64,000 nucleotides of DNA, taken from contig NW_018480077.1 of the NCBI RefSeq assembly GCF_002113885.1, positions 1,277,930 to 1,341,929 on the forward strand, in the 5' to 3' direction. The translations under genes were made by a program, and so were the position numbers. Source of the DNA: Mizuhopecten yessoensis (taxonomy: Eukaryota). The notes beneath the pieces were generated by a model. That model did no database searches and was not told the origin of the DNA. It saw nothing but the letters and a program-made list of their open reading frames with translations. Positions 1-15,300 of this stretch are shown one piece after another; positions within the stretch are counted from its first letter, which is position 1, and each line of letters begins with the position of its first letter.

Positions 1-846
1 TCTGCGTCTGTCAGAATAATAATTATCAATATGTAAAATAGTTACGTTCTAATGTCGAGTGTTGCGTGTATGAAGGGGCGTGCTGTTTGTTGTGTAACTG
101 TTTGTCTACGTGCTTACGTCCTCATATAGATATACATAATTGGTTTGTGTTGCATACAATGAGATTAAATAAACTGAAAAATACAGTTAAATACCCCCAG
201 CTTTTCCCGCAAAATGCCGATTTTCTAGTAATATTATGATTTCCGAAATACACTATTAAGATACCTTATTTTATGATAACTTTGATAATATGAATTGGTT
301 AGTAAAATGAATTTTCAATTGATTCTGTGTGTCTGCAATTTATTCAGTTAAGTCATTGTGTTTTAATTTAAAAAAAAAATGAAAACAATGTATGAAGCAT
401 TATAATGCTCGTTAGTTTAACATACTTGTAAAGGGTGTCGCATGTATCAACTACGCATATCTTTTTTCCACGATAATATAGCCATTTTAAATTAAGATAT
501 TGTTTTTTAATACAATATGTTTAAAATCTATATCTTATGGATTATTATACACTGGATTTTAGGATTTCACCAAGAACGTCAAATGTATCAGTCTGACTGT
601 GTCGCTTTAACGTGCTGTTTAGAAATTCACCTGTACGATTGTTTATGTTAATTGGTATGTAGCTGGCCCATTGTTTTCAGAAATAAACCTATTAACATTC
701 GTGAGTAACCGCAGATTTATCACCGAATGACAGGGATAGGTAAAACCACGGACTTCAGGTCGAGTTTCGTGGTAAAACCGAAATACGTAAAAAGTGAACG
801 TAAAAATGATACATCTACCATAACGTCATTTAATCTATACACAAAC

Positions 847-936
847 GGAATTTCCATACATTTTTAATAAGAAAGGTTACGCATTTTTCGTAATGATATC
901 GAAAGTAAATTTCCGGGACTATAAACTATATAAAAG
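847..936 (+). promoter_or_regulatory. Proximal promoter of the secreted precursor gene: TATA box with kB-like motifs
   Basis: TATATAAAAG at 927-936, about 90 nt before ATG 1024. GGAATTTCC at 847-855 and GTAAATTTCC at 905-914 (reverse GGAAATTTAC) resemble Rel/NF-kB sites. Motif match only. Confidence 0.55.
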
Positions 937-1023
937 GAGCCGTACGACGCTGAGGGTTAAACTGAACCACGACAGGCAAAGATCATCTTCCTGAACAAGA
1001 ACTCCGGCGACACTAAGAAGACC

Positions 1024-2842
1024 ATGTTGTTTCTACATGTAGCTCTGATCCTAGGGGTGCTGAGTCAACATGCTTCCCAGCTAACCCATGGCGCCGTTTT
1101 GGGTGCGCCCGAAGTTCCCTATACCGTTCTCGGGACAGATGCAGCAAACAATCTGGTCATAGAGGGCACTACTCGTCCCCTCGGCGGCGCCGCCGCCTCA
1201 AACAGTCTGGTCATAGAGGGCGTTGACGTAAATACCTTGTCTACCGAAAACCTGGAAAGTTTCTTGACGGCTTTGGATGAAAAGTTTTTCGGGGAGTTAG
1301 GTAAGGCGTTTTCCTTATTATTTATAAAGAATAACCATTATTTTTGTAACTCTAACGTTTTGTACTACCCTCTGCCCTACTCCAAAACAGTTTTTGTTTG
1401 GGGGTTCCTTTAATCCAAGTATGTTAACCTTTTTTTGGTATTTGATAGTAATGTTTCAATACAATTACTGTGATAAATGACATTCATCTCAGATATCTGA
1501 AAAGTCAGTGTTTTTTTTTATAAAGTTATAATGAAGGATGTTTCATATTTTGTAGATATCGAAGTTGGAAAGCATATATTGGGAAGTGTTGCTACCGGAG
1601 GTAGGGCAAAGAGATGGGTCCCACTTGTTGCGCGTGGGGCGTTCGCTTTAGGGCGTGGTCTATTCAGGGCACTGTCCCGCGCAAAGCCGTCAAGAAGTGC
1701 AGGGAAACTCACCCGCCAGTACGATAGAAAAGGCAACTTCCGAAAGGCAGTCAGTGACTTCCACAGACTGAAGCCAACAAATGTCAAAAGGTTCAAAGGA
1801 AAGGTGAGTTTTTGTACACATACTGCTACTATTCACTTACAATAAATTCATACATAAATAACGTCTTTCGTGTTAGCCTACCATCGTATGAGTGCTGTGA
1901 TTTGAAGTGTGATTGTGTTTTGTATATAACCCTTCTTTTGCTATGAATAATCTCTACACTATTTGTCCATATTTTTCAGCTTTCATGCCAACTATAAAAC
2001 AGAGAGGTGTTGGTTAATTAACTGTCAGTTTAATAACTTCTGACACTTTCATCAGTTAAAATCATTATCTCTAGAACGTGACGGTCACAATATTACAGAC
2101 ATTCATCCGCAATGTAGAATCAAACTGAATGCTTAAATTTACTAGCGGTCATCTTTACCAACACAGTCGAAAAATGCCAACTTGTTTTGAAGTGTTATAA
2201 AATTCAATGTACGCATTGTAAACAAAGAATAAATTTGTTTTTGCATATAATTAGCAAATTTTCACTTAAATCAAAATCCTACGTGGTCTGGTTGTTTGTT
2301 TGAAAACAGAGCTGTCAATTGCTCGAAAACATTATGAAATGGTAAAGAAAGATTTGTTTGATGTGGTTAACCCTCGTTAATTAATCTAAAACTTTGAGAA
2401 AAATAATGTTTTGAACATCAATATTTTGTTTTCTTTTAACGATTGAAAATCAATTAACTCGAATAAGATGAACATGGTAAACAATGGTCGCTTATTGTTA
2501 TATATAACTCGCATTATCATATCAAGGCCTTGTTCTTCAGGATCCCACATTTATATGTCAGAAGTTAGAACTTAGTTGCAGCTTCATAATTAGTGTGCCT
2601 ATGCCTTATTGGATTATTTTTATCTGATATTATCTAAGTAGCGATGTAACTCTGTCCACTTTTGACACTTTTTTTCTGATTTTCCGTAGGATGGTCTGGT
2701 TGGTTTGGAGGGACGTATGGGGAAAAACACCGTCAAAGTAAGGTCGACCAGTTCCGGGAATCGCCCTACTCTTGAGGTGTACAAGACTGACAAGGCCGCT
2801 AGAAAAATCCTCCGAAAAGTTAGATACAACAGGAACAACTAA
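1024..2842 (+). CDS. Secreted prepro-protein, 225 aa: signal peptide, anionic propeptide, RAKR furin site, cationic mature domain resembling bacterial polymorphic-toxin C-terminal domains
   Basis: join(1024..1300,1556..1803,2690..2842); all introns GT-AG with matching phases (1, 0) and no stops. Hydrophobic N-terminus MLFLHVALILGVLSQHASQLTHG. Mature part WVPLVARGAFALGRGLFRALSRAKPSRSAGKLTRQYDRKGNFRKAVSDFHRLKPTNVKRFKGKDGLVGLEGRMGKNTVKVRSTSSGNRPTLEVYKTDKAARKILRKVRYNRNN. TATA upstream, AATAAA at 2891-2896. Gene structure is well supported; function is inferred. Confidence 0.85.
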
Positions 2843-4198
2843 AGACAGTCTCACATCGGGCTGTTCCCGTTAGCTAGTAACTAACATGATAATAAAAATA
2901 GTGTTTTTGCAAAGGCAATACGTCAAAAGTAAAAGGAGGATAAAGATTACCGATCCGATATCTCATAAAAGTAGTGATATCAGCAAAAAAAAATAAACAT
3001 TTTTTTAATTTCATTTTCTTCAATGTTTAATAGAAATCCATAATCCATACTTTCAAGCTAAGAAGTACCCAATATCTCGAGCGTACCCATTCATCTTGCT
3101 GTTTCAAAATTGCTGTCTTCATTGTAAGTGATATGTTGTTATACGGTAAATATTATCTCATTATGACGTTGGAATCCTGGTTGTGTGTTATTGTATGTTA
3201 ATACAACAACGATTACTTACATTTACGACAACTACCGGTTGTATTGTTACCGGAAAGGTAATATCTGTTGCGGTGACTTTTTTTTATCTGAAGCGTCTGA
3301 GAAATTAGCCGATTATTTTCACCAGGGTTTTCTTTCAATGAATTGATTTGTGTGTTTATGCTTCTTTGTAGTGTTTTTGTCTCTCTCTCTCTCTATTTCG
3401 TATGTTTCATATGGAGCTTTCCCGAGTGATGAAATACATATTTGTATTTTTATATCATAATTCATTGTAACACCATTTAAAACATCTACTTTAAAGAGGA
3501 AGCAATAAATTTATTAAAAATATGTAATCGTGTTAGTATTGTTCTTATTTTAACGTTTCAGTTCTCGTAGAACCTGCCACTTGGTGCATGAGGAGGAGTA
3601 TGAAACATGGCACTGTTGATTTCTGTCTCTGTTTGAAAATTGCCCTAGAAAAATCGTAGAATAATGTCTTTACTTACACTCATTAATTAAAGGAAATGAT
3701 GAACATGACCAACTCATAGAAAAATGCATTGTTTGTCAAATGATTTCTACAATCGTCAAATCCCGATGTGAGAAAGAGTAAAAATGGTATTTTACAAAAC
3801 ACAGAGAGGAAAAAACATTCTGGTTTCAATACGTTTCAACCGCTAGAACAGCACTATCCTCATTTTTAGAAAGAAAAAAACCCTCTAGCGAGGAAGAAAA
3901 TTATACGAGTTTTAATCACATTATGCTTAGTAATGATCTCGAGGCGAAGAGCGTAAACAAACGATTGCTGACGTGATGAATAAAAAAGCTTTTGCCAAAT
4001 ACTAGCTTGCTTCTACTGATATACAGTAAACCCTTTTTTGATCTATTTATAAAACATTTCACTAACCCCGTAAATCTATAACACTGAACTAACGATTAAA
4101 TTTGCATTAGTTATGCACTGTAGAGTCTCGTATATATACATCTACACACAAAACTACTTTTACCTATATACTGAGCAGCCTTTTAATTAAATCCAGTC

Positions 4199-5800
4199 TC
4201 AATAGAAATTCACGATTTCTAGGAAACCATGCAAGGTATCGGGACAAATGAAGCGAAACTGTGTCATCTTTCCGAGTCTAATGACTTTCGGAGTTCCCGT
4301 CCTATCTATAAATACGCCCGCACTCTCAGTAAAACCCTGAAGAGATAACAAAATGAAAATATAGATGGACTCTCCAACTGCATTGTTAATAATCTCCCTA
4401 ACATCTTTCTCTTGGACAAGATGTACGTATATATACATTTCGTGAAATCGGACGAAAATAGCGATCATATACCGGAAAAGTTTTTTTTATTTTTATAAAT
4501 AACGTGTTTTGACATGATGCATCAATATATCAAATGCAAAAGAAATGTTCAGAAAGAATTTTCCCCCAGAGAATCAAAACCAAGTTAAACGATACACTGT
4601 ATTTTAATTCAAAACAATGACAAGCACCAGGCTTAAAGAAAACGAGGAATATAATGAAACTGATAAGACAACATCAAAACATAAACGTGATGACAACAGT
4701 GAAGAAAACCCAACAAATCACGAGAGTCTGCCGGACTAGCGGGCTAGAGTATGTTTACATAGAACAGCATACATCAGAAACTTTGCTGCACTATGTTTAT
4801 ATTGTTTACACTGGATCGTTGTAACTTGCATCGCGTTGAGAGCAGCAAGTGTCCGGCTTCTCGCTGAGGTATGGTCCGTGACTTATTTGTAGTTGGTCGA
4901 AGGTACTTTGGAAGCTTTATTGGGCACTTTGGAAGCTTTATTGGGTACTTTGACGGCTTTATTGGGTACTTTGGAAGCTTTATTGGGTACTTTGACGGCT
5001 TTATTGGGTACTTTGGAAGCTTTATTTCGTGGTTTGAAGCATGCACTTGCTTGTTTGAAACATGTGTTTGGTGTTTGAAGCCTCAAATTGGTTATTTGAA
5101 ACATGCAATTGGTTGCTCGAAGCCTGCAATTGGCTGTCGTGACAAACATTTGGATGTCTGAAACTTATATTTCGTTGTTCGTAGCCTGTACTTGATTGGC
5201 TGGAACATGTAAATGTACTTAGATCACTGAAACTGTCACTTGGCCATGGTTTGCTGTAGTTATTACATGGCTTATTACAATTGTTACTTGGCACAAAACA
5301 GTTCCAACTCGTAAAGTCCATGTTGTTTCCGACATTGTAACAGCTTGAAGCCGGCTGACTACAGATGTTGGTTCTTGGTCGATTTTGGTTGTAACAGATC
5401 TTACATTGTCGGTCATAAATACAAACTAAGACACCGTCCACGTCTTCTTCTGATTTACCTGGCTGTCTGTCTGTTGATTCTACAGCTTTTGTCACTTTCT
5501 GTTGCTCGTCCACTTCTTGTCTAATAAAAGTTAACCAGTCATTGATTATATCGCCTAGTTTTGGACCCTTCACATTTATTGGACATGGAGGTTCCTGACG
5601 TTTCTGAAATGTAAAATTGAAGTTACACGCATCTATCAATCAACGCATTAGGTCCGTCACTTTTTTCTTAGACTTTTTATCATCATCGCTTTCCCAATAT
5701 TACCATCTGCTGAGGTACTATTCATTTCCTCGAAATATTTCTGAAGAATTTTAATCGTTTACTTATTTGAACATTGAAGAGATGAAATAGCAACGCATCA
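4199..5800 (-). pseudogene. Decayed protein-coding sequence of unknown family containing a 21-nt (heptad) repeat tract
   Basis: Overlapping minus-strand ORF pieces (5022-5639, 4774-5046, 4199-4468), with in-frame stops upstream (LSRW*YWESDDDKKSKKKVTDLMR*LIDACNF). A 20-nt unit inside the 21-nt repeat array near 5070 marks a frameshift. Boundaries approximate. Confidence 0.4.
4902..5132 (-). repeat. 21-bp tandem repeat, about 11 units, graded from near-perfect to diverged
   Basis: Unit CTTTGGAAGCTTTATTGGGTA on the + strand; minus-strand translation PIKLPKY/PIKPSKY and QLHVSNN-type heptads. Confidence 0.85.
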
Positions 5801-6877
5801 TTTCCGAGAATTATTTTCGATATTTTTTAAAACTGCGTTAACATATTTAAGAGGAAGACAGATAACAAATTTACTTCAGTTGTTTGAAACAATATCAATA
5901 TAGATTTAGAACAGATAACATTAACTTGTAATGCAAAATAAAAATAAAAGTGTTTTAACTTGCCACACGGAAAACTACATTGCAGGTTATATGTTTCATA
6001 TTTACCACGAACATGTAACAATACTGGCGGCGAAATAAATAAAGCGAAAGTAATAATCCTCCTTGAGTGGTTATCGAATCAACATCCAATATTGTATCGA
6101 GTGATGTTACTGATGCGGGGTATGGTTTACAGCAGTGTTATTTTCGTGATTCGTGTGATTAATTGAATTTACGAACTCAAGTTATGCTAGAAATTGTACA
6201 AAGACTGCATTGCGTTTGATTAAAATCACTCTTGCTGACAATGGACGGTACTATTACTGTCCAGGTCTCATAACTGGCTTTAAAGATGCCCTACTACACC
6301 TACCCCTCCCCCACCCTTCTTCTGACGACCGACTGCTTGAAAGCATATACATATAATACGAGCTATATCTACCGTCCTGCCCCCTAACCGCTGGGCTATC
6401 GGTGTTGTTGGGTCTGGTCTAACCACCGTTGGTTTGGTGCCATGTAGTAACTTCCGGTTAGCTGCCTCGGCTCTTTTAGCGTCATCCATGTTATCTACAA
6501 ATATATTAACATTCTCTTTCAGGAGGCAGATTCATATTAAACCTGTACCTTCTTTCTATGTAGTTATGGATATTTTTCTTCTTTGATTGGTGAATCATAA
6601 TTTATTATTTTGGGCTAAACATAGCCTTGGGCATAATAAACGAAATGGTGACCGCTATTTTGCCCTTCTTCTGATGAGCAACAAAACGAAACAAAACACC
6701 AAAATAGCCATGAAGATTAAATACCGACAATTTTAGCCATTAATTTGCCTCAAAAAACAAGAGGGGCAAAAATAAAAACGGTACGTGTCAGCCATCAAGG
6801 TTTATCGTAACGGTATTTTCAAATAAACTTTATTTATTTTACAACAATTATGAAACAACTTATTTCAATTAATATGT

Positions 6878-6998
6878 TAGCGCACGGGGTCTTGATGTGG
6901 GAGGAAACCGCAGCACCCGGAGAAACCCTAGTTGATCGGCCAGGTGACCCATACCTTTTCACATCCAATCGGGGATTCGAACTCCTGCCGCCTTGGTG
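6878..6998 (-). mobile_element. tRNA-derived SINE fragment with V-domain-like core
   Basis: Minus strand has B-box GAGTTCGAATCCCC (6971-6984) followed by GGGTTTCTCCGGGTGCTGCGGTTTCCTCCCACA (6896-6928), typical of V-SINE central domains. Confidence 0.65.
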
Positions 6999-7574
6999 AT
7001 TATATAATGCAATTGAAAAAGATTAAACAATCAGCTTTATACCGTAACTTTGACCTCGCCCATAATTCATCAAAGAGATACCAGAAAATATACCCGAAAG
7101 ACGCGTTCCTATGTGCTTGTAAAGGACATATGTAAGAAAATTTTACAAAACGTGACCAGTGCAACAGAAAATTAGAAATGCTAGTCATTGAGAGGCACAG
7201 ACGACTCAACATATCAAAAATCTTTAATGGAGAAACATGCGTTTTTTTCTCCTCCTCGCTTTGGATTCACAAAGTTAATTAATATTAAATGTACATTGAT
7301 AACTCATATATTAATATCAATAGTCCACAAAATCCTTTAAAATGTTTTGAGAATATCCTTTAAAAGTCTTTTTCACTTTCTTACTTACTTACCTACACAA
7401 TTTTCTGTGATTTTTTGTTACCTTCCATTTGCGTAAAACCTTGGTTTTTAAAATCTATTTTGTTAGAATTAAGATTCTTTTCAAACCATGATATATGTGA
7501 ATTAGGTGATACTACATTCGAGGAGGAGGAGGACATTTTGCATGATGTCGGTGTACATTTACAGTTAACACTGC

Positions 7575-7700
7575 CCCTCCCCTACACGTCCGCCCCTCCC
7601 CTACACGTCCGCAGATTGCACGGTCAGACGTGGATTCGAACACGGGACCCTCCGATCACTAAACAGACCGCCGCTCTACCAATTGAGCTACCTGGTCGCC
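7575..7700 (-). mobile_element. tRNA-derived repeat head (SINE-like or tRNA pseudogene)
   Basis: Minus strand A-box TAGCTCAATTGGTAGAGC and B-box GTTCGAATCC. T and acceptor stems are mismatched. Adjacent ~19-nt direct repeat CCCCTCCCCTACACGTCCG. Confidence 0.55.
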
Positions 7701-8145
7701 GACGATTGACTCATTGTAGTTCCGCTACACACCGACATCACTTCCCAAATTAATATAGGAATACCCCACCCCTAACCCGCATTTCAAGATTCCAAAATCT
7801 GGTCAACCCGTATGATTTTGTTGCACAAGCTGGCGATATGAAGTAAATTGTATTACACCTGTTGGCATAAACCAAAGTTATAAGTCTAAATAAGTTTGAA
7901 ACGATTAAGAATAAGTACCAGAAGAAAACTATATTACAATCTATGCAAAGTGCATGTTCCTGTGAGTGAACCGAACCAGCTCACAACAATGGCCTCCAGT
8001 GAAACGGACAGGAGGTAGCCAAGGTTGTAGACTGTGAAACATGGCATCAATGTATCCGATACTATAGGTACACGTGTATATAACTTCGATTGCTTAACTT
8101 ACCTTAGCTCAGGCTTTCTGTGTGATTAAATACGAACTTTCTTTG

Positions 8146-8678: not shown

Positions 8679-10036
8679 CTTTGATTATAAAATCATTTCA
8701 GTTGACTGGACGGAACATTCACACGTAAAAATGGCGAGGGTACTCAATTTTTAAATTACTAATTTAAATAAGAAGAAAGGGACCTTTGGGAGGGTAGGAA
8801 AACATCATGACCTCATTTCTTTCTAGTTTTGCGAACTTTCTGTAAACCGAATTGCTACTTTAATCATTTGTCTCTTACGTGTAATACACTGACAGCTTAC
8901 TTCACATGATGGTATACGTAAAAGCTTAAAAGCATCGACTTTCGCATTGCTGTAATATACGAATTTGTTATCAATTTGGGACAGGCTCGGCCCATGCAAC
9001 TCATTGAAAGTCATGAAATTGGCGGGGAAAATATGACGTTTCATAATTTATGACGTCAAAATTATGCTATTATAGTAGACCCCCATTTACATGTGGTTTA
9101 AGCCCGTGAATGTTTCATGCATTTATGAAACATGAACAAGAACCCAGCTTTCATTCGAGTTTATTCATTTTTTTTCAAAAGGAAATTGATAGATTTATAT
9201 GTTCTGATCGTTTATGTTTTCTTAAATCTATTTTTTCTATACGGCATTTCATTATCAATGAGTTTGTTTATGTAAATCTAAAACCCGGAGGACAGCATAT
9301 TTTTAGTTATGCTAATCACATCCAGTTTTCTGTTGTAACATATTAACATATGTAATAGAGGTCTTTATTTTGTAATGCCTCCGCATTAAACTGACGTTCT
9401 TTGTTAGAGCTAACAAATGTTGCAATAAATAACAGTGGATTGGACAAACGTTAAAATTTATCGAGACTATCACATCCTTTTTATTTGTATGTCTTATTGA
9501 AATGATATAGCTTATTGAAGTCTTAAAAACAAACTCGAAAAAGAAGAGAATTCGAAAAAAGGTTTTGGTTCTGGGGGTAATTTCTCGTTCTCATTTTGTC
9601 CTTTGCAGATATTATATAAATTTTGCCGTTTATAGAGAGTGTATCGAACGCGCCCCATGAAAGTTGTAAACACAGGTACATGTGCATTTGCGGGCTGGGG
9701 TGTAGATTTTGAAGGTTTCGAGGTTTGTATGTTTTATTTAAAGTGTACGGTGAGGTCATTTTAAAGTAGTTAGTTGATTTGTAATCATATTTATTCCAAA
9801 CATATGCAGTCGCTCCGACAGAATGAGATTGTAGCCTAGTATACTGTTTTGTATACGGTAACGGTGTAATCAGTAGTCTGTGAGTAGACAGTAGACACAG
9901 TAAGTTTCTTAACCGTACTTCGATCAGCTGATGATAGAGTAAAGCGACCAAAAGCCCTGTGTACCAGTACAAGAGTTTGTTTGTTTCAAATTCCGAGATA
10001 AACAGTATTTGTTTTTTGTTTGTTTATATTAACAGT

Positions 10037-12341: not shown

Positions 12342-15300
12342 ATGACCAGTCCTTTACCTGACCATGTGATCAAGCATAGTGCTGAACTGGGACTTGAAGT
12401 AAGTATTTTATTAATCCTTCCTACTTTTCATGTAGTTCTATAATACCAGGGAATTCGGTGAGGAAGTACGACTTTGTTTCTTTAATCCTAGATACTATCT
12501 ATACTACTCACATTTTGCTAAGGATCACTTTTGTTTTTGGGCATATGTGAAAAATAAATATTGTATTTGGTTTATACTGAGATTATTTTTGAAAAATTGA
12601 TTGTTCTTTTAAATCATCAGCATGCAAAAATTCCAAAAATCATAATTACAGTCGGAAAATGGGCCACAGGAAAAGGGTTACCCTTAAAATTGGTAACAAC
12701 GAGGTATTCACTAAAAAACTTAGATTGAACAAAACTCATCCTAAATAAACAGAAACTGAGGAAAAGGGTTACCCTTAAAATTGGTAACAACAAGGTTTTC
12801 ACTAAAAAACTTAAATTGAACAAAAAAAGTAAACAGAAACTGTTTTAGTATCGAGTGTGACATCCATGAGCATCAATTACAGCTCACAACGTCTGTTTTT
12901 GTGGGATAGCATTCCACTCAGCTACCAATGAACATTTCTGGCAGAGAGAGCTGTCTGCAGCATGTCTCACACATGCTCGATGGGATTTAGATCCAGCAAG
13001 CGGCCTGGCCAATCCATTCTTTGAATAGTCTCTTGCTGTAGATACTGCTCAGTCACCCTTGCTCTATATATATGTGGCCTAGCATTATCGTCCATAAGGA
13101 TGAAGTCAGGGCTGATAGTGCCAGCGTAGGGTCTGACATTGGCTTCAAGGATTCCATCGTAGTAAATCTGGGCCGTAACGGTACCATTATGGAAGACATG
13201 GAGGTCAGTTTCCAACGAAGGCTTATGCCTCCCCACACCATCACTGAACCTCCGCCATATCGGTCAAGCATGTTCCACAACGTTACCTGCCTGGAACCTC
13301 CCCCCAGGTTGTCTCCATACTCTAACGCGCCTGTCGGTGAAGTCAAGACAGAATCTGGACTCGTCAATAAAAAGGAGCGGTTCCCATTCCTGAAGAGCCA
13401 AAGTGCTGTGAGCTTGGGCCCAACCTAATCGGTCCCTAACATGGCGGGCAGTTAAGGGAAGTCGTATTGCTGGTCTACGTGACCTTAAACTAGGATCATG
13501 AAGACATTTCCTAACTGTCTGAGTGGCTACCCGGGTACCAGAAGCATTTAGGAGGTCATTTTGTAAAGCTGCGGCAGTCTGGAACCTGTGACACTGTGCC
13601 TGTATGAGCAAAAATCGGGTCTTGGCGCTGCGTTGTAGGCCTAGAACGACCTCCAGCATGATGTCTGGAAGGGTTTCTGTTAGGTTGGAAATGATTCCAC
13701 ATTCCTGCCTCCACACATTGAGACACCCAAGGTCTGCTGCAACCTGACGTTGACGTTGCTAACTTGCAGCATTTCGATGCCCCTATTCATTTCACAATCT
13801 TTAACCATTGTCTGGTTGTCTTTGTGCCATATTAAAATAAAAACATGCGAAGAATATTCATCAAATTGATTTCCTTAACAATTTGAACAACCCCTTACTT
13901 AGCCTAGCTTAGCTTTTGAAAGGGGTGAACATGTGGAAAAGTGTGCACACGCTTTTACGGTTGACTGAACACACCCACACAGGATGATTTGGAAGGCTAA
14001 CATATTCGCCAAAAACAGTATGGAAGGAAAATACAATATCCTTTCTAACATTTTAATTTTGTTTTTTCAAAATATAGGTGATCCCTAGCAAAATGTGAGT
14101 AGTATATATACTATAGCGCAGGTATTGATTCCTGTGTACTGCGTAACTAATAACATTATTTAATTTTTGTGTAACTGCATCTGGGATGTGCCATAGTAAC
14201 AAAGACTTAGAAATATTAAGTCATAAATTGATTCAAAAATATCTGTTAAACAATGTTAAAGCAACAGTATGTCTTTGACTTGTAGAAAAATTGGTCTGTT
14301 AAGAAGGACTTTGTGGATGCCTTTCTTAAACGCCACCTTCCTAAAGGGAGACTACTCAAAGGTGAAGATGAAGAGATTCAGACAAAGTATCTGATGCTGG
14401 ATAATACTGGAGTTAACAAAGTAACAGGAAAAAAACGACCAAGGAAAAAGAAAACTCTTTCTACAAGGGAGTGCAGAAATCTGAAAATATTCAAAGTGGA
14501 AAAAGAAGGTCAAACGTACGTATGATTAGCATGTATAAAAATGTTGTTATATTTAGATAAAGGATATTTTCATTTTTCAAAAATGTGACTTTTTAAAATC
14601 GTTTATTTTATGCATGCAGACAAGCAAAGTTCTAAACTACATGCATTGCTTTAAAATTGTGCTGGTTTAAATGGTTAGTTCAAAGATCTAAAATTGACCA
14701 TCTTCGTTATGTATAGGAAAGAATCTCTTGTATAAGCCTTTTCTGTTTATAGATAATTTTACAACTTCGTAGTTTTATATTTCTGACTTTAATAAGAAAA
14801 GGAATAATGAGGTTCCATTGTACAAAATTTTGAGTTATTCCAGGAAGTGGACTATATTTCAAACAAGTAACCAGCTTTGGTTGGCTGTTAGGCCTAGATT
14901 GTTAAATGGTGTTTGAATCCTATATTTGTTTGCCAATGTGCTGATAGGCATGGGCAATCAACTCCTGTTGTTTGGGGTATGTTGTACTTAGTGTATAAGT
15001 TGTATGTTCTCCACAGTGTCAAGTTTTGCTATTACCCTGTTTGTGATGAGGATGATTTTATCATGACAACGACCGTTAGTTCACAACATACCCTATGTAA
15101 TTTTTACATGTGAAGAGTAAAATAAACACAGTGTGAATATGAGACAGAGACAGACAGACAGACAGACATTCTTTATTTCCTCTAATAAGAGATTACAGAG
15201 ATAGATAGATCAGACCCTGCTTACCCACATTTTGAGTGTACAAATACAAAATACAGTGTAAATGTAATGGAGCCGCGGTGGCCAAGTGGTTAAGGCGTCT

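Follow-up and report, generated by a model that had tools for sequence, protein, structure and literature searches.

A scallop gene for a probable secreted precursor, with a mature chain homologous to bacterial polymorphic toxin tips

How does a chain that reads like the tip of a bacterial toxin come to stand behind a signal peptide in a scallop gene, and what might it do there? The question is raised by a three-exon gene at positions 1024-2842 (+) of a 64,000-nucleotide (nt) stretch of Mizuhopecten yessoensis DNA (contig NW_018480077.1, positions 1,277,930 to 1,341,929), here termed the window. An original prediction, made from the letters of the window, proposed that the gene encodes a horizontally acquired interbacterial toxin which gained introns and a prepro chassis. 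The mature chain is homologous to the tips of DUF637/CdiA, RHS, PT-HINT, MafB and PT-VENN proteins, and an old transfer of a toxin tip from bacteria to molluscs is almost certain. Taken as a whole, the best explanation, and a likely one, is that a toxin module was acquired, mounted on a prepro chassis and turned into a secreted effector.

Similarity to bacterial proteins is already seen in single-sequence searches. With phmmer, the mature chain was compared with 1.84 billion representative proteins (E up to 1e-3) and 135 matches were obtained, many of them at the extreme C-terminus of long proteins. These include the tip of a 1331-amino acid (aa) DUF637 (CdiA-type) protein on a 3.7-Mb contig (E 3e-7), the tip of an RHS protein from Alicyclobacillus suci (E 1e-5) and a PT-HINT protein tip. 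When a mollusc profile (34 domains) and a bacterial profile (64 domains) were aligned with the N-terminal helix trimmed, hhalign gave a probability of 99.8% and E 9.6e-28, with 45% consensus identity over 76 columns. A bacteria-only profile run against the whole scallop genome has two matches only, both in this gene: exon 2 at E 1.1e-7 and exon 3 at E 2e-3. The motifs T.QY, G, A..DF, P.NV, V.VR, SS, PTLE and K.RY are common to the scallop chain and the bacterial tips; the motif string given in the original prediction is almost exactly the consensus computed from 129 aligned homologues. D160, R193, S196, T202, E204, K218, R220 and Y221 are each at least 85% conserved in both the mollusc and the bacterial clades, and the mollusc clade has lost none of the polar residues that the bacterial toxins conserve.

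An AF2 model built on the family alignment has a mean predicted local distance difference test (pLDDT) value of 84.5, with the core above 90. It superposes on ESM Atlas models of the C-termini of MafB, CdiA, PT-VENN and Fil_haemagg proteins with template-modelling (TM) scores of 0.57-0.75 and root-mean-square deviations of 1.8-2.8 Å over 82-102 residues, both sides of the comparison being predicted structures. The proposed kinship with CdiA, Rhs and MafB toxin tips is thus borne out by phmmer, by profile-profile alignment and by model superposition, and the two checks suggested for it, a profile search and a structure prediction, both lead to bacterial toxin tips, although curated family libraries are blank. 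No Pfam match was found for the single exons, the whole protein, the mature part or any of the 129 family members; NCBIfam also gave zero matches, and PDB sequence searches with the exons, the whole protein and the mature part returned nothing. As no family member matches any Pfam model, the toxin domain is uncatalogued.

The gene has a coding length of 678 nt, i.e. 225 codons and a stop, in exons at 1024-1300, 1556-1803 and 2690-2842. The borders are canonical GT/AG and read AG/GTAAGG and TTGTAG/ at intron 1, and AAG/GTGAGT and CCGTAG/ at intron 2. A protein database search with the exon 1 open reading frame (ORF) showed that the predicted protein is letter-for-letter the uncharacterized NCBI entry LOC110443815 of M. 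yessoensis, in agreement with the three-exon, 225-aa model first put forward. The precursor layout given with that model (signal peptide, acidic pro-region, RAKR and a Cys-free mature chain) holds in all its numbers. The mature chain of 113 aa contains 31 K/R, 6 D/E and zero Cys, with an isoelectric point (pI) of 11.9, and the pro-region has 12 D/E versus 3 K/R, a net charge of -9 and a pI of 4.05. The first 18 mature residues have a helical moment of 0.71, above the 95th percentile of shuffles (0.54), as expected of the amphipathic segment that had been read there. The copy number is one in the 988-Mb M. yessoensis genome. The features of the gene are as follows.

920-934, +: two TATAAA boxes with starts at 920 and 929, from a pattern scan, 90-104 nt 5′ of the ATG; a likely core promoter
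1024-1092, +: putative signal peptide, aa 1-23, in exon 1; a hydrophobic N-terminus kept in the scallop orthologues and in most animal homologues
1093-1300, +: exon 1 part of the acidic pro-region, aa 24-92 and base 1 of the D93 codon
1301-1555, +: intron 1, phase 1, which interrupts the Asp codon of an EL/DI motif
1556-1602, +: end of the pro-region, aa 93-108, in exon 2
1603-1614, +: RAKR, a predicted dibasic furin-type cleavage site; most animal homologues have R/K-x-K/R-R here
1615-1668, +: N-terminal amphipathic cationic helix of the mature chain, aa 113-130
1669-1803, +: first half of the toxin-domain core, aa 131-175, with a beta-hairpin, the A..DF helix and a strand; the stronger of the two bacteria-only profile matches
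1804-2689, +: intron 2, phase 0, within the toxin domain
2690-2842, +: exon 3, second half of the toxin domain, aa 176-225 (V.VR, SS, PTLE, K.RY), and the stop codon; the other profile match
2891-2896, +: AATAAA, a candidate polyadenylation signal, 49 nt 3′ of the stop

A pro-region motif common to bivalves and gastropods ends at intron 1, and the exon 1 pro-region contains the start of this conserved motif. The M. yessoensis pro-region also has a 12-aa duplication (window 1144-1179 and 1198-1233, aa 41-52 and 59-70: ANNLVIEGTTRP / SNSLVIEGVDVN), which is found only in this species; three other aligned scallops are gapped there.

Splicing is shown in the orthologue of the bay scallop, Argopecten irradians. 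Three independent transcript-like contigs, one run behind each, carry this orthologue as an ORF without a break. On the Argopecten genome the contigs split into three blocks, and when aligned to the window they break at 1300/1556 and at 1803, within a 2-3 nt alignment overlap. The predicted junctions therefore stand, with the qualification that the support for them in M. yessoensis is indirect and comes through the orthologue.

Named homologues occur in four scallops and in Haliotis, Sinanodonta, Batillaria, Gigantopelta, Bradybaena and Pomacea, nearly all of them on contigs of 2-131 Mb. The animal proteins have a common chassis, in which a signal peptide is followed by an acidic pro-region, then an R/K-x-K/R-R site, an amphipathic helix and, last, the domain; there is almost no Cys. 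Intron 1 is found at the same position and phase in scallop, abalone and freshwater (unionid) mussel. In the freshwater mussel intron 2 lies two codons further on; in abalone its site is a different one. As intron 1 is identical in the three animals, the signal/pro exon must have been joined to the toxin exon before the bivalve-gastropod split. Because the gene has introns and is common to bivalves and snails, molluscs would have taken over the bacterial weapon long ago. Profile homology, the shared intron 1 and the common chassis all speak for the proposed history of a horizontally acquired bacterial toxin that was given introns and a prepro chassis. Copy number varies in the family: there are three loci in Haliotis rufescens and at least three tandem genes in Sinanodonta woodiana, and the gene is single copy in scallops. 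A search with the full-length alignment was swamped by signal-peptide matches and gave no further named homologues.

In a maximum-likelihood tree, which is unrooted and built on 89 columns, the named molluscs group with similar sequences in a clade (Shimodaira-Hasegawa-like approximate likelihood-ratio test, SH-aLRT, 96), and the block with all long and bacterial proteins is separate from the mollusc clade with a support of 92. A tree with all 61 animal-type sequences constrained to one clade does better than the tree from the free quick search, and the approximately unbiased test does not reject it (p-AU 0.87); thus one acquisition suffices. The donor lineage cannot be named from an unrooted tree of this length. 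The expected phylogeny is therefore recovered in part: the animal clade is there, and nesting within bacterial sequences is not shown. Also in the animal-type set is a group of 23 transcript-like sequences with the same signal/pro/dibasic/helix chassis (e.g. P0121, L011:50-649), termed group 3. An alignment of 21 members shows that they are without the V.VR/SS and K.RY motifs, and their activity may have changed or been lost.

The bacterial setting of the domain bears on what was acquired. In bacteria the domain is found on five scaffold kinds (DUF637/CdiA, RHS, PT-HINT, MafB and PT-VENN) and in at least four phyla (Bacillota, Pseudomonadota, Campylobacterota and Spirochaetota). At three unrelated loci an ORF of 130-144 aa directly follows the toxin domain.

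L004:9989-10378: downstream ORF at a CdiA-type locus, with an 8-nt overlap with the toxin gene
L005:8418-8822 and 8841-9251: downstream ORF in two copies, after an 800-aa protein, with a 14-nt gap
L009:4251-4682: downstream ORF after an RHS-repeat protein on the Brucepastera parasyntrophica chromosome, with an 8-nt overlap

The downstream ORFs are mutually homologous (E 3e-8, 5e-28 and 4e-6), acidic (pI 4.5-4.8) and without a signal peptide, and no Pfam family was found for them. Two spirochaete loci were recovered by a search with a single protein query. This acidic, signal-less ORF family is probably the immunity family of the toxin domain, and on such genomic evidence the bacterial domain, with its classical genomic signature, would be a genuine toxin. 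An acidic neutraliser located in the cytoplasm would imply a basic toxin that acts in the cytoplasm. A model of the immunity family (pLDDT 71, four sequences) resembles PIM7 (PDB 8OWU) and an uncharacterised Neisseria gonorrhoeae protein (5V77); homology to PIM7 finds no sequence support. In the scallop genome the immunity family was not found with one query and no positive control, and the scallop gene has no delivery scaffold. It should be pointed out that the neighbours of the DUF637 gene at the CdiA-type locus are mobile-element genes, which include transposases, an integrase and an Mrr-type restriction gene. The 1331-aa gene begins directly after a DDE transposase fragment and so may be a displaced or truncated cdiA.

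Compared with the tips of CdiA, Rhs and MafB proteins, the scallop chain shows homology over the whole module of ~95-110 aa, with the same motifs and about the same length. The animal version has neither repeats nor a delivery scaffold; instead its gene has introns, and its precursor carries a signal peptide, a furin site and an acidic pro-domain. It also differs in charge: the median net charge of the domain is +14 in molluscs versus +6 in bacteria, about twice as high, and the N-terminal helix has a median charge of +4 in animals versus -1 in bacteria, where it is neutral or acidic. Models of bacterial homologues contain a structural counterpart to this helix at the same place. The furin-type site lies at the ancestral module boundary, and cleavage would free about the same unit that bacteria deliver. 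Substitution rates between M. yessoensis and Argopecten irradians were computed exon by exon. Synonymous differences (pS) are 0.56-0.78 by exon, near saturation; the mature chain has a nonsynonymous value (pN) of 0.13 versus a pS of 0.65, and the pro-region has a pN of 0.22. The whole 113-aa mature chain evolves under purifying selection.

These properties suggest the following course of events. A common ancestor of bivalves and gastropods would have acquired the C-terminal toxin module of a CdiA/Rhs/MafB/PT-HINT-type protein, which was placed behind an exon for a signal peptide and the conserved acidic pro-domain. The module would then have gained introns and diversified in molluscs, with scallops keeping a single copy. 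In the secretory pathway the acidic pro-domain (pI 4) might mask the basic toxin (pI 11.9) and so replace the acidic immunity protein. A furin-type convertase would cut RAKR and free the 113-aa chain, i.e. the whole bacterial module. The cationised amphipathic helix and the high positive charge may help to bind and cross microbial envelopes, after which the enzyme core would attack a target in the cytoplasm. A role as a secreted defence effector appears somewhat favoured by the sequence properties. The more specific idea of a self-delivering antimicrobial enzyme, in which the pro-domain was obtained by exon capture as a safety catch and the cationised helix and surface serve as an entry device, is speculative and rather less likely to be right than wrong.

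The precursors of cationic antimicrobial peptides offer a parallel, as they too have a signal peptide, an acidic propiece, a dibasic site and a basic product that starts with an amphipathic helix. The scallop product differs from these in being a 113-aa folded, enzyme-like domain of bacterial origin which is Cys-free, and not a short or disulphide-rich peptide. This likeness also bears on the strongest of the alternatives, namely that the origin is the same and the toxin is aimed at eukaryotic cells, be they those of predators, parasites, competitors or prey, or cells of the animal itself that undergo programmed death. In its extreme positive charge and its amphipathic helix the chain is closer to antimicrobial peptides than to known mollusc venom components, the gene has no targeting or receptor-binding module, and it is single copy and conserved in filter-feeding scallops. 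Cytoplasm-acting polymorphic toxins are, however, often toxic to eukaryotes too, and several toxin domains found by the same approach were lethal to yeast as well as to bacteria (preprint 10.1101/2021.10.19.465003). Moreover, the tandem expansion in Haliotis and Sinanodonta is of a kind often met with in venom and defence genes, and the data do not specify the target organism. A eukaryotic target is thus unlikely, yet it is the alternative that survives best.

What the mature chain might attack can be approached through its fold. A nucleic-acid target is suggested tentatively, at slightly less than an even chance, with RNA somewhat likelier than DNA. The original prediction had in mind a ribonuclease (RNase) of the BECR fold, a reading to which the models lend weak structural support. 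Some BECR members, such as RelE, are without His. The matches to BECR-fold toxins (the CdiA-CT of PDB 5T86; RelE/YoeB) lie within the structural background and have no sequence-profile link. A preprint gives the BECR catalytic set as D/E/N, H and R/K, whereas the scallop and bacterial family conserves Glu, Arg, Lys and Tyr but no His. Foldseek against PDB returned nothing below E 1e-3. PDB profile matches to TPR/PPR repeats were rejected as artefacts on one helix, and the same artefact is behind the phmmer matches P0075 and P0111. Membership in the PT7 DNase toxin family (D37/H47) was also rejected, as the PT7 chain is absent from the profile and fold matches of the toxin and there is no conserved His; with PT7/PIM7 of Bacillus cereus (PDB 8OWU; preprint 10.1101/2021.10.19.465003), only the immunity fold shows a resemblance. 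An R-S-E ADP-ribosyltransferase reading fails because, as reasoned from the alignment, the residues are far too close together.

The fold comparison raises a second alternative, in which the domain was co-opted for a non-toxic role, for example in signalling or binding, as a secreted protein that is processed in the manner of a prohormone; the inactive teneurin C-terminal toxin relics are a parallel. Among solved structures the best match is the teneurin ABD (antibiotic-binding-like domain), which is non-catalytic, although homology to it finds no sequence support. A dibasic convertase site and a prepro layout are typical of neuropeptide precursors as well, and group 3, having lost V.VR/SS and K.RY, suggests that loss of the ancestral activity occurs in the family. 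Such a role is nevertheless quite improbable for the scallop protein, as its clade keeps every polar residue conserved in the bacterial toxins, which is rare in binding-only relics, and the selection described above acts on the whole chain. That there was no transfer into animals at all, and the similarity stems from bacterial contamination, convergence or an animal-to-bacteria transfer, is hardly credible, as the unrooted tree is the sole and general caveat in its favour, and it faces spliceosomal introns, an AT-rich animal context on a 2.38-Mb scaffold, orthologues on 23-131 Mb contigs of seven other molluscs with one intron conserved, a profile-profile E of 1e-27 that excludes convergence, and a native setting of the domain in bacteria, with its several phyla and scaffolds and a candidate cognate immunity gene. 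The argument from introns against contamination, made at the outset, is therefore sound, and introns, mollusc orthologues and the profile-profile value together refute both the contamination and the convergence readings.

Several points weigh against the reading of the gene as an acquired toxin that became a secreted effector. Toxic activity of the members, bacterial and animal alike, is putative, and so are expression in defence tissue, induction by microbes and cleavage at RAKR. The family alignment has no conserved His or metal-binding motif; no relative in Pfam, NCBIfam or among solved structures names a mechanism, and the best solved match, the teneurin domain, is not a nuclease. The tree is poorly resolved as well as unrooted, such that a nesting inside bacterial diversity is putative, and the taxonomic range of the family is tentative, as many of the animal-type homologues are transcript contigs. 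To be listed here also is a complex prediction for the pro-segment (aa 59-108) and the mature chain, with a score of 0.00, which gives no verdict and is evidence neither way.

To our knowledge, few interbacterial weapons have been taken over by animals, and the Dae amidases are the main example. Tae and Dae enzymes cut peptidoglycan from outside the membrane. The Dae proteins, work on which was presented by Chou et al. in 2015, are reportedly domesticated amidase effectors derived from Tae toxins of T6SS (type VI secretion systems). The scallop gene resembles Dae in that an interbacterial toxin gene was given a signal peptide and introns in animals and was kept under selection. It differs in toxin family and in the likely site of action, and it has a furin-processed anionic propiece. 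Membership in the Dae sequence family was rejected, as no amidase or other Pfam family was found. The comparison with Dae made in the original prediction is thus apt as to evolutionary kind, given the bacterial toxin ancestry combined with introns, a signal peptide and vertical inheritance. Because the immunity proteins have no signal peptide, the target is probably cytoplasmic, and the animal protein would have to enter the target cell. As toxins of this class must be injected into the cytoplasm of a rival, the animal, if it uses the protein in free secreted form, had to solve delivery and self-protection anew.

The scallop gene can be looked at as a new example of a known phenomenon, the takeover of an interbacterial toxin by an animal (cf. 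Dae). It departs from Dae in toxin class and in the likely site of action, and its prepro design is undescribed for such genes. The 2012 polymorphic-toxin census lists other domains shared with animals; the census families are in Pfam, and none matches the scallop protein. Full-text literature searches turned up no paper that deals with these loci, nor one that describes a toxin domain of the CdiA/Rhs/MafB type in molluscs. With respect to the published PT1-PT9 domains, the newness of the family is based on a comparison with PT7 only. The gene is old and widespread in molluscs, including farmed scallops and abalone, and is unannotated everywhere; it adds a candidate immune effector family for species where disease matters economically. 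If the proposed history is true, this is the first animal use of a CdiA/Rhs/MafB-type toxin tip, one which predates the bivalve-gastropod split, and a new toxin and immunity family is defined in bacteria. An uncatalogued bacterial toxin and candidate immunity family is in this way flagged on CdiA, Rhs, MafB and PT-HINT scaffolds, with a mechanism that is directly testable.

In the neighbourhood of the gene, no Rfam family was found in window 1-8000 and there is no convincing gene on the opposite strand. The nearest recognisable element is a decayed Tc1/mariner transposase ~10 kb downstream, at window 12967-13716 (-), which is split over frames and matches HTH_Tnp_Tc3_2 (E 1e-14) and, weakly, DDE_3. 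Closer to the gene, a short tandem repeat at 4774-5161 gives ORFs that are proline/lysine-rich on one strand, with KYPIKPS-like units, and glycine/phenylalanine-rich on the opposite strand; it looks like non-coding repeat DNA.

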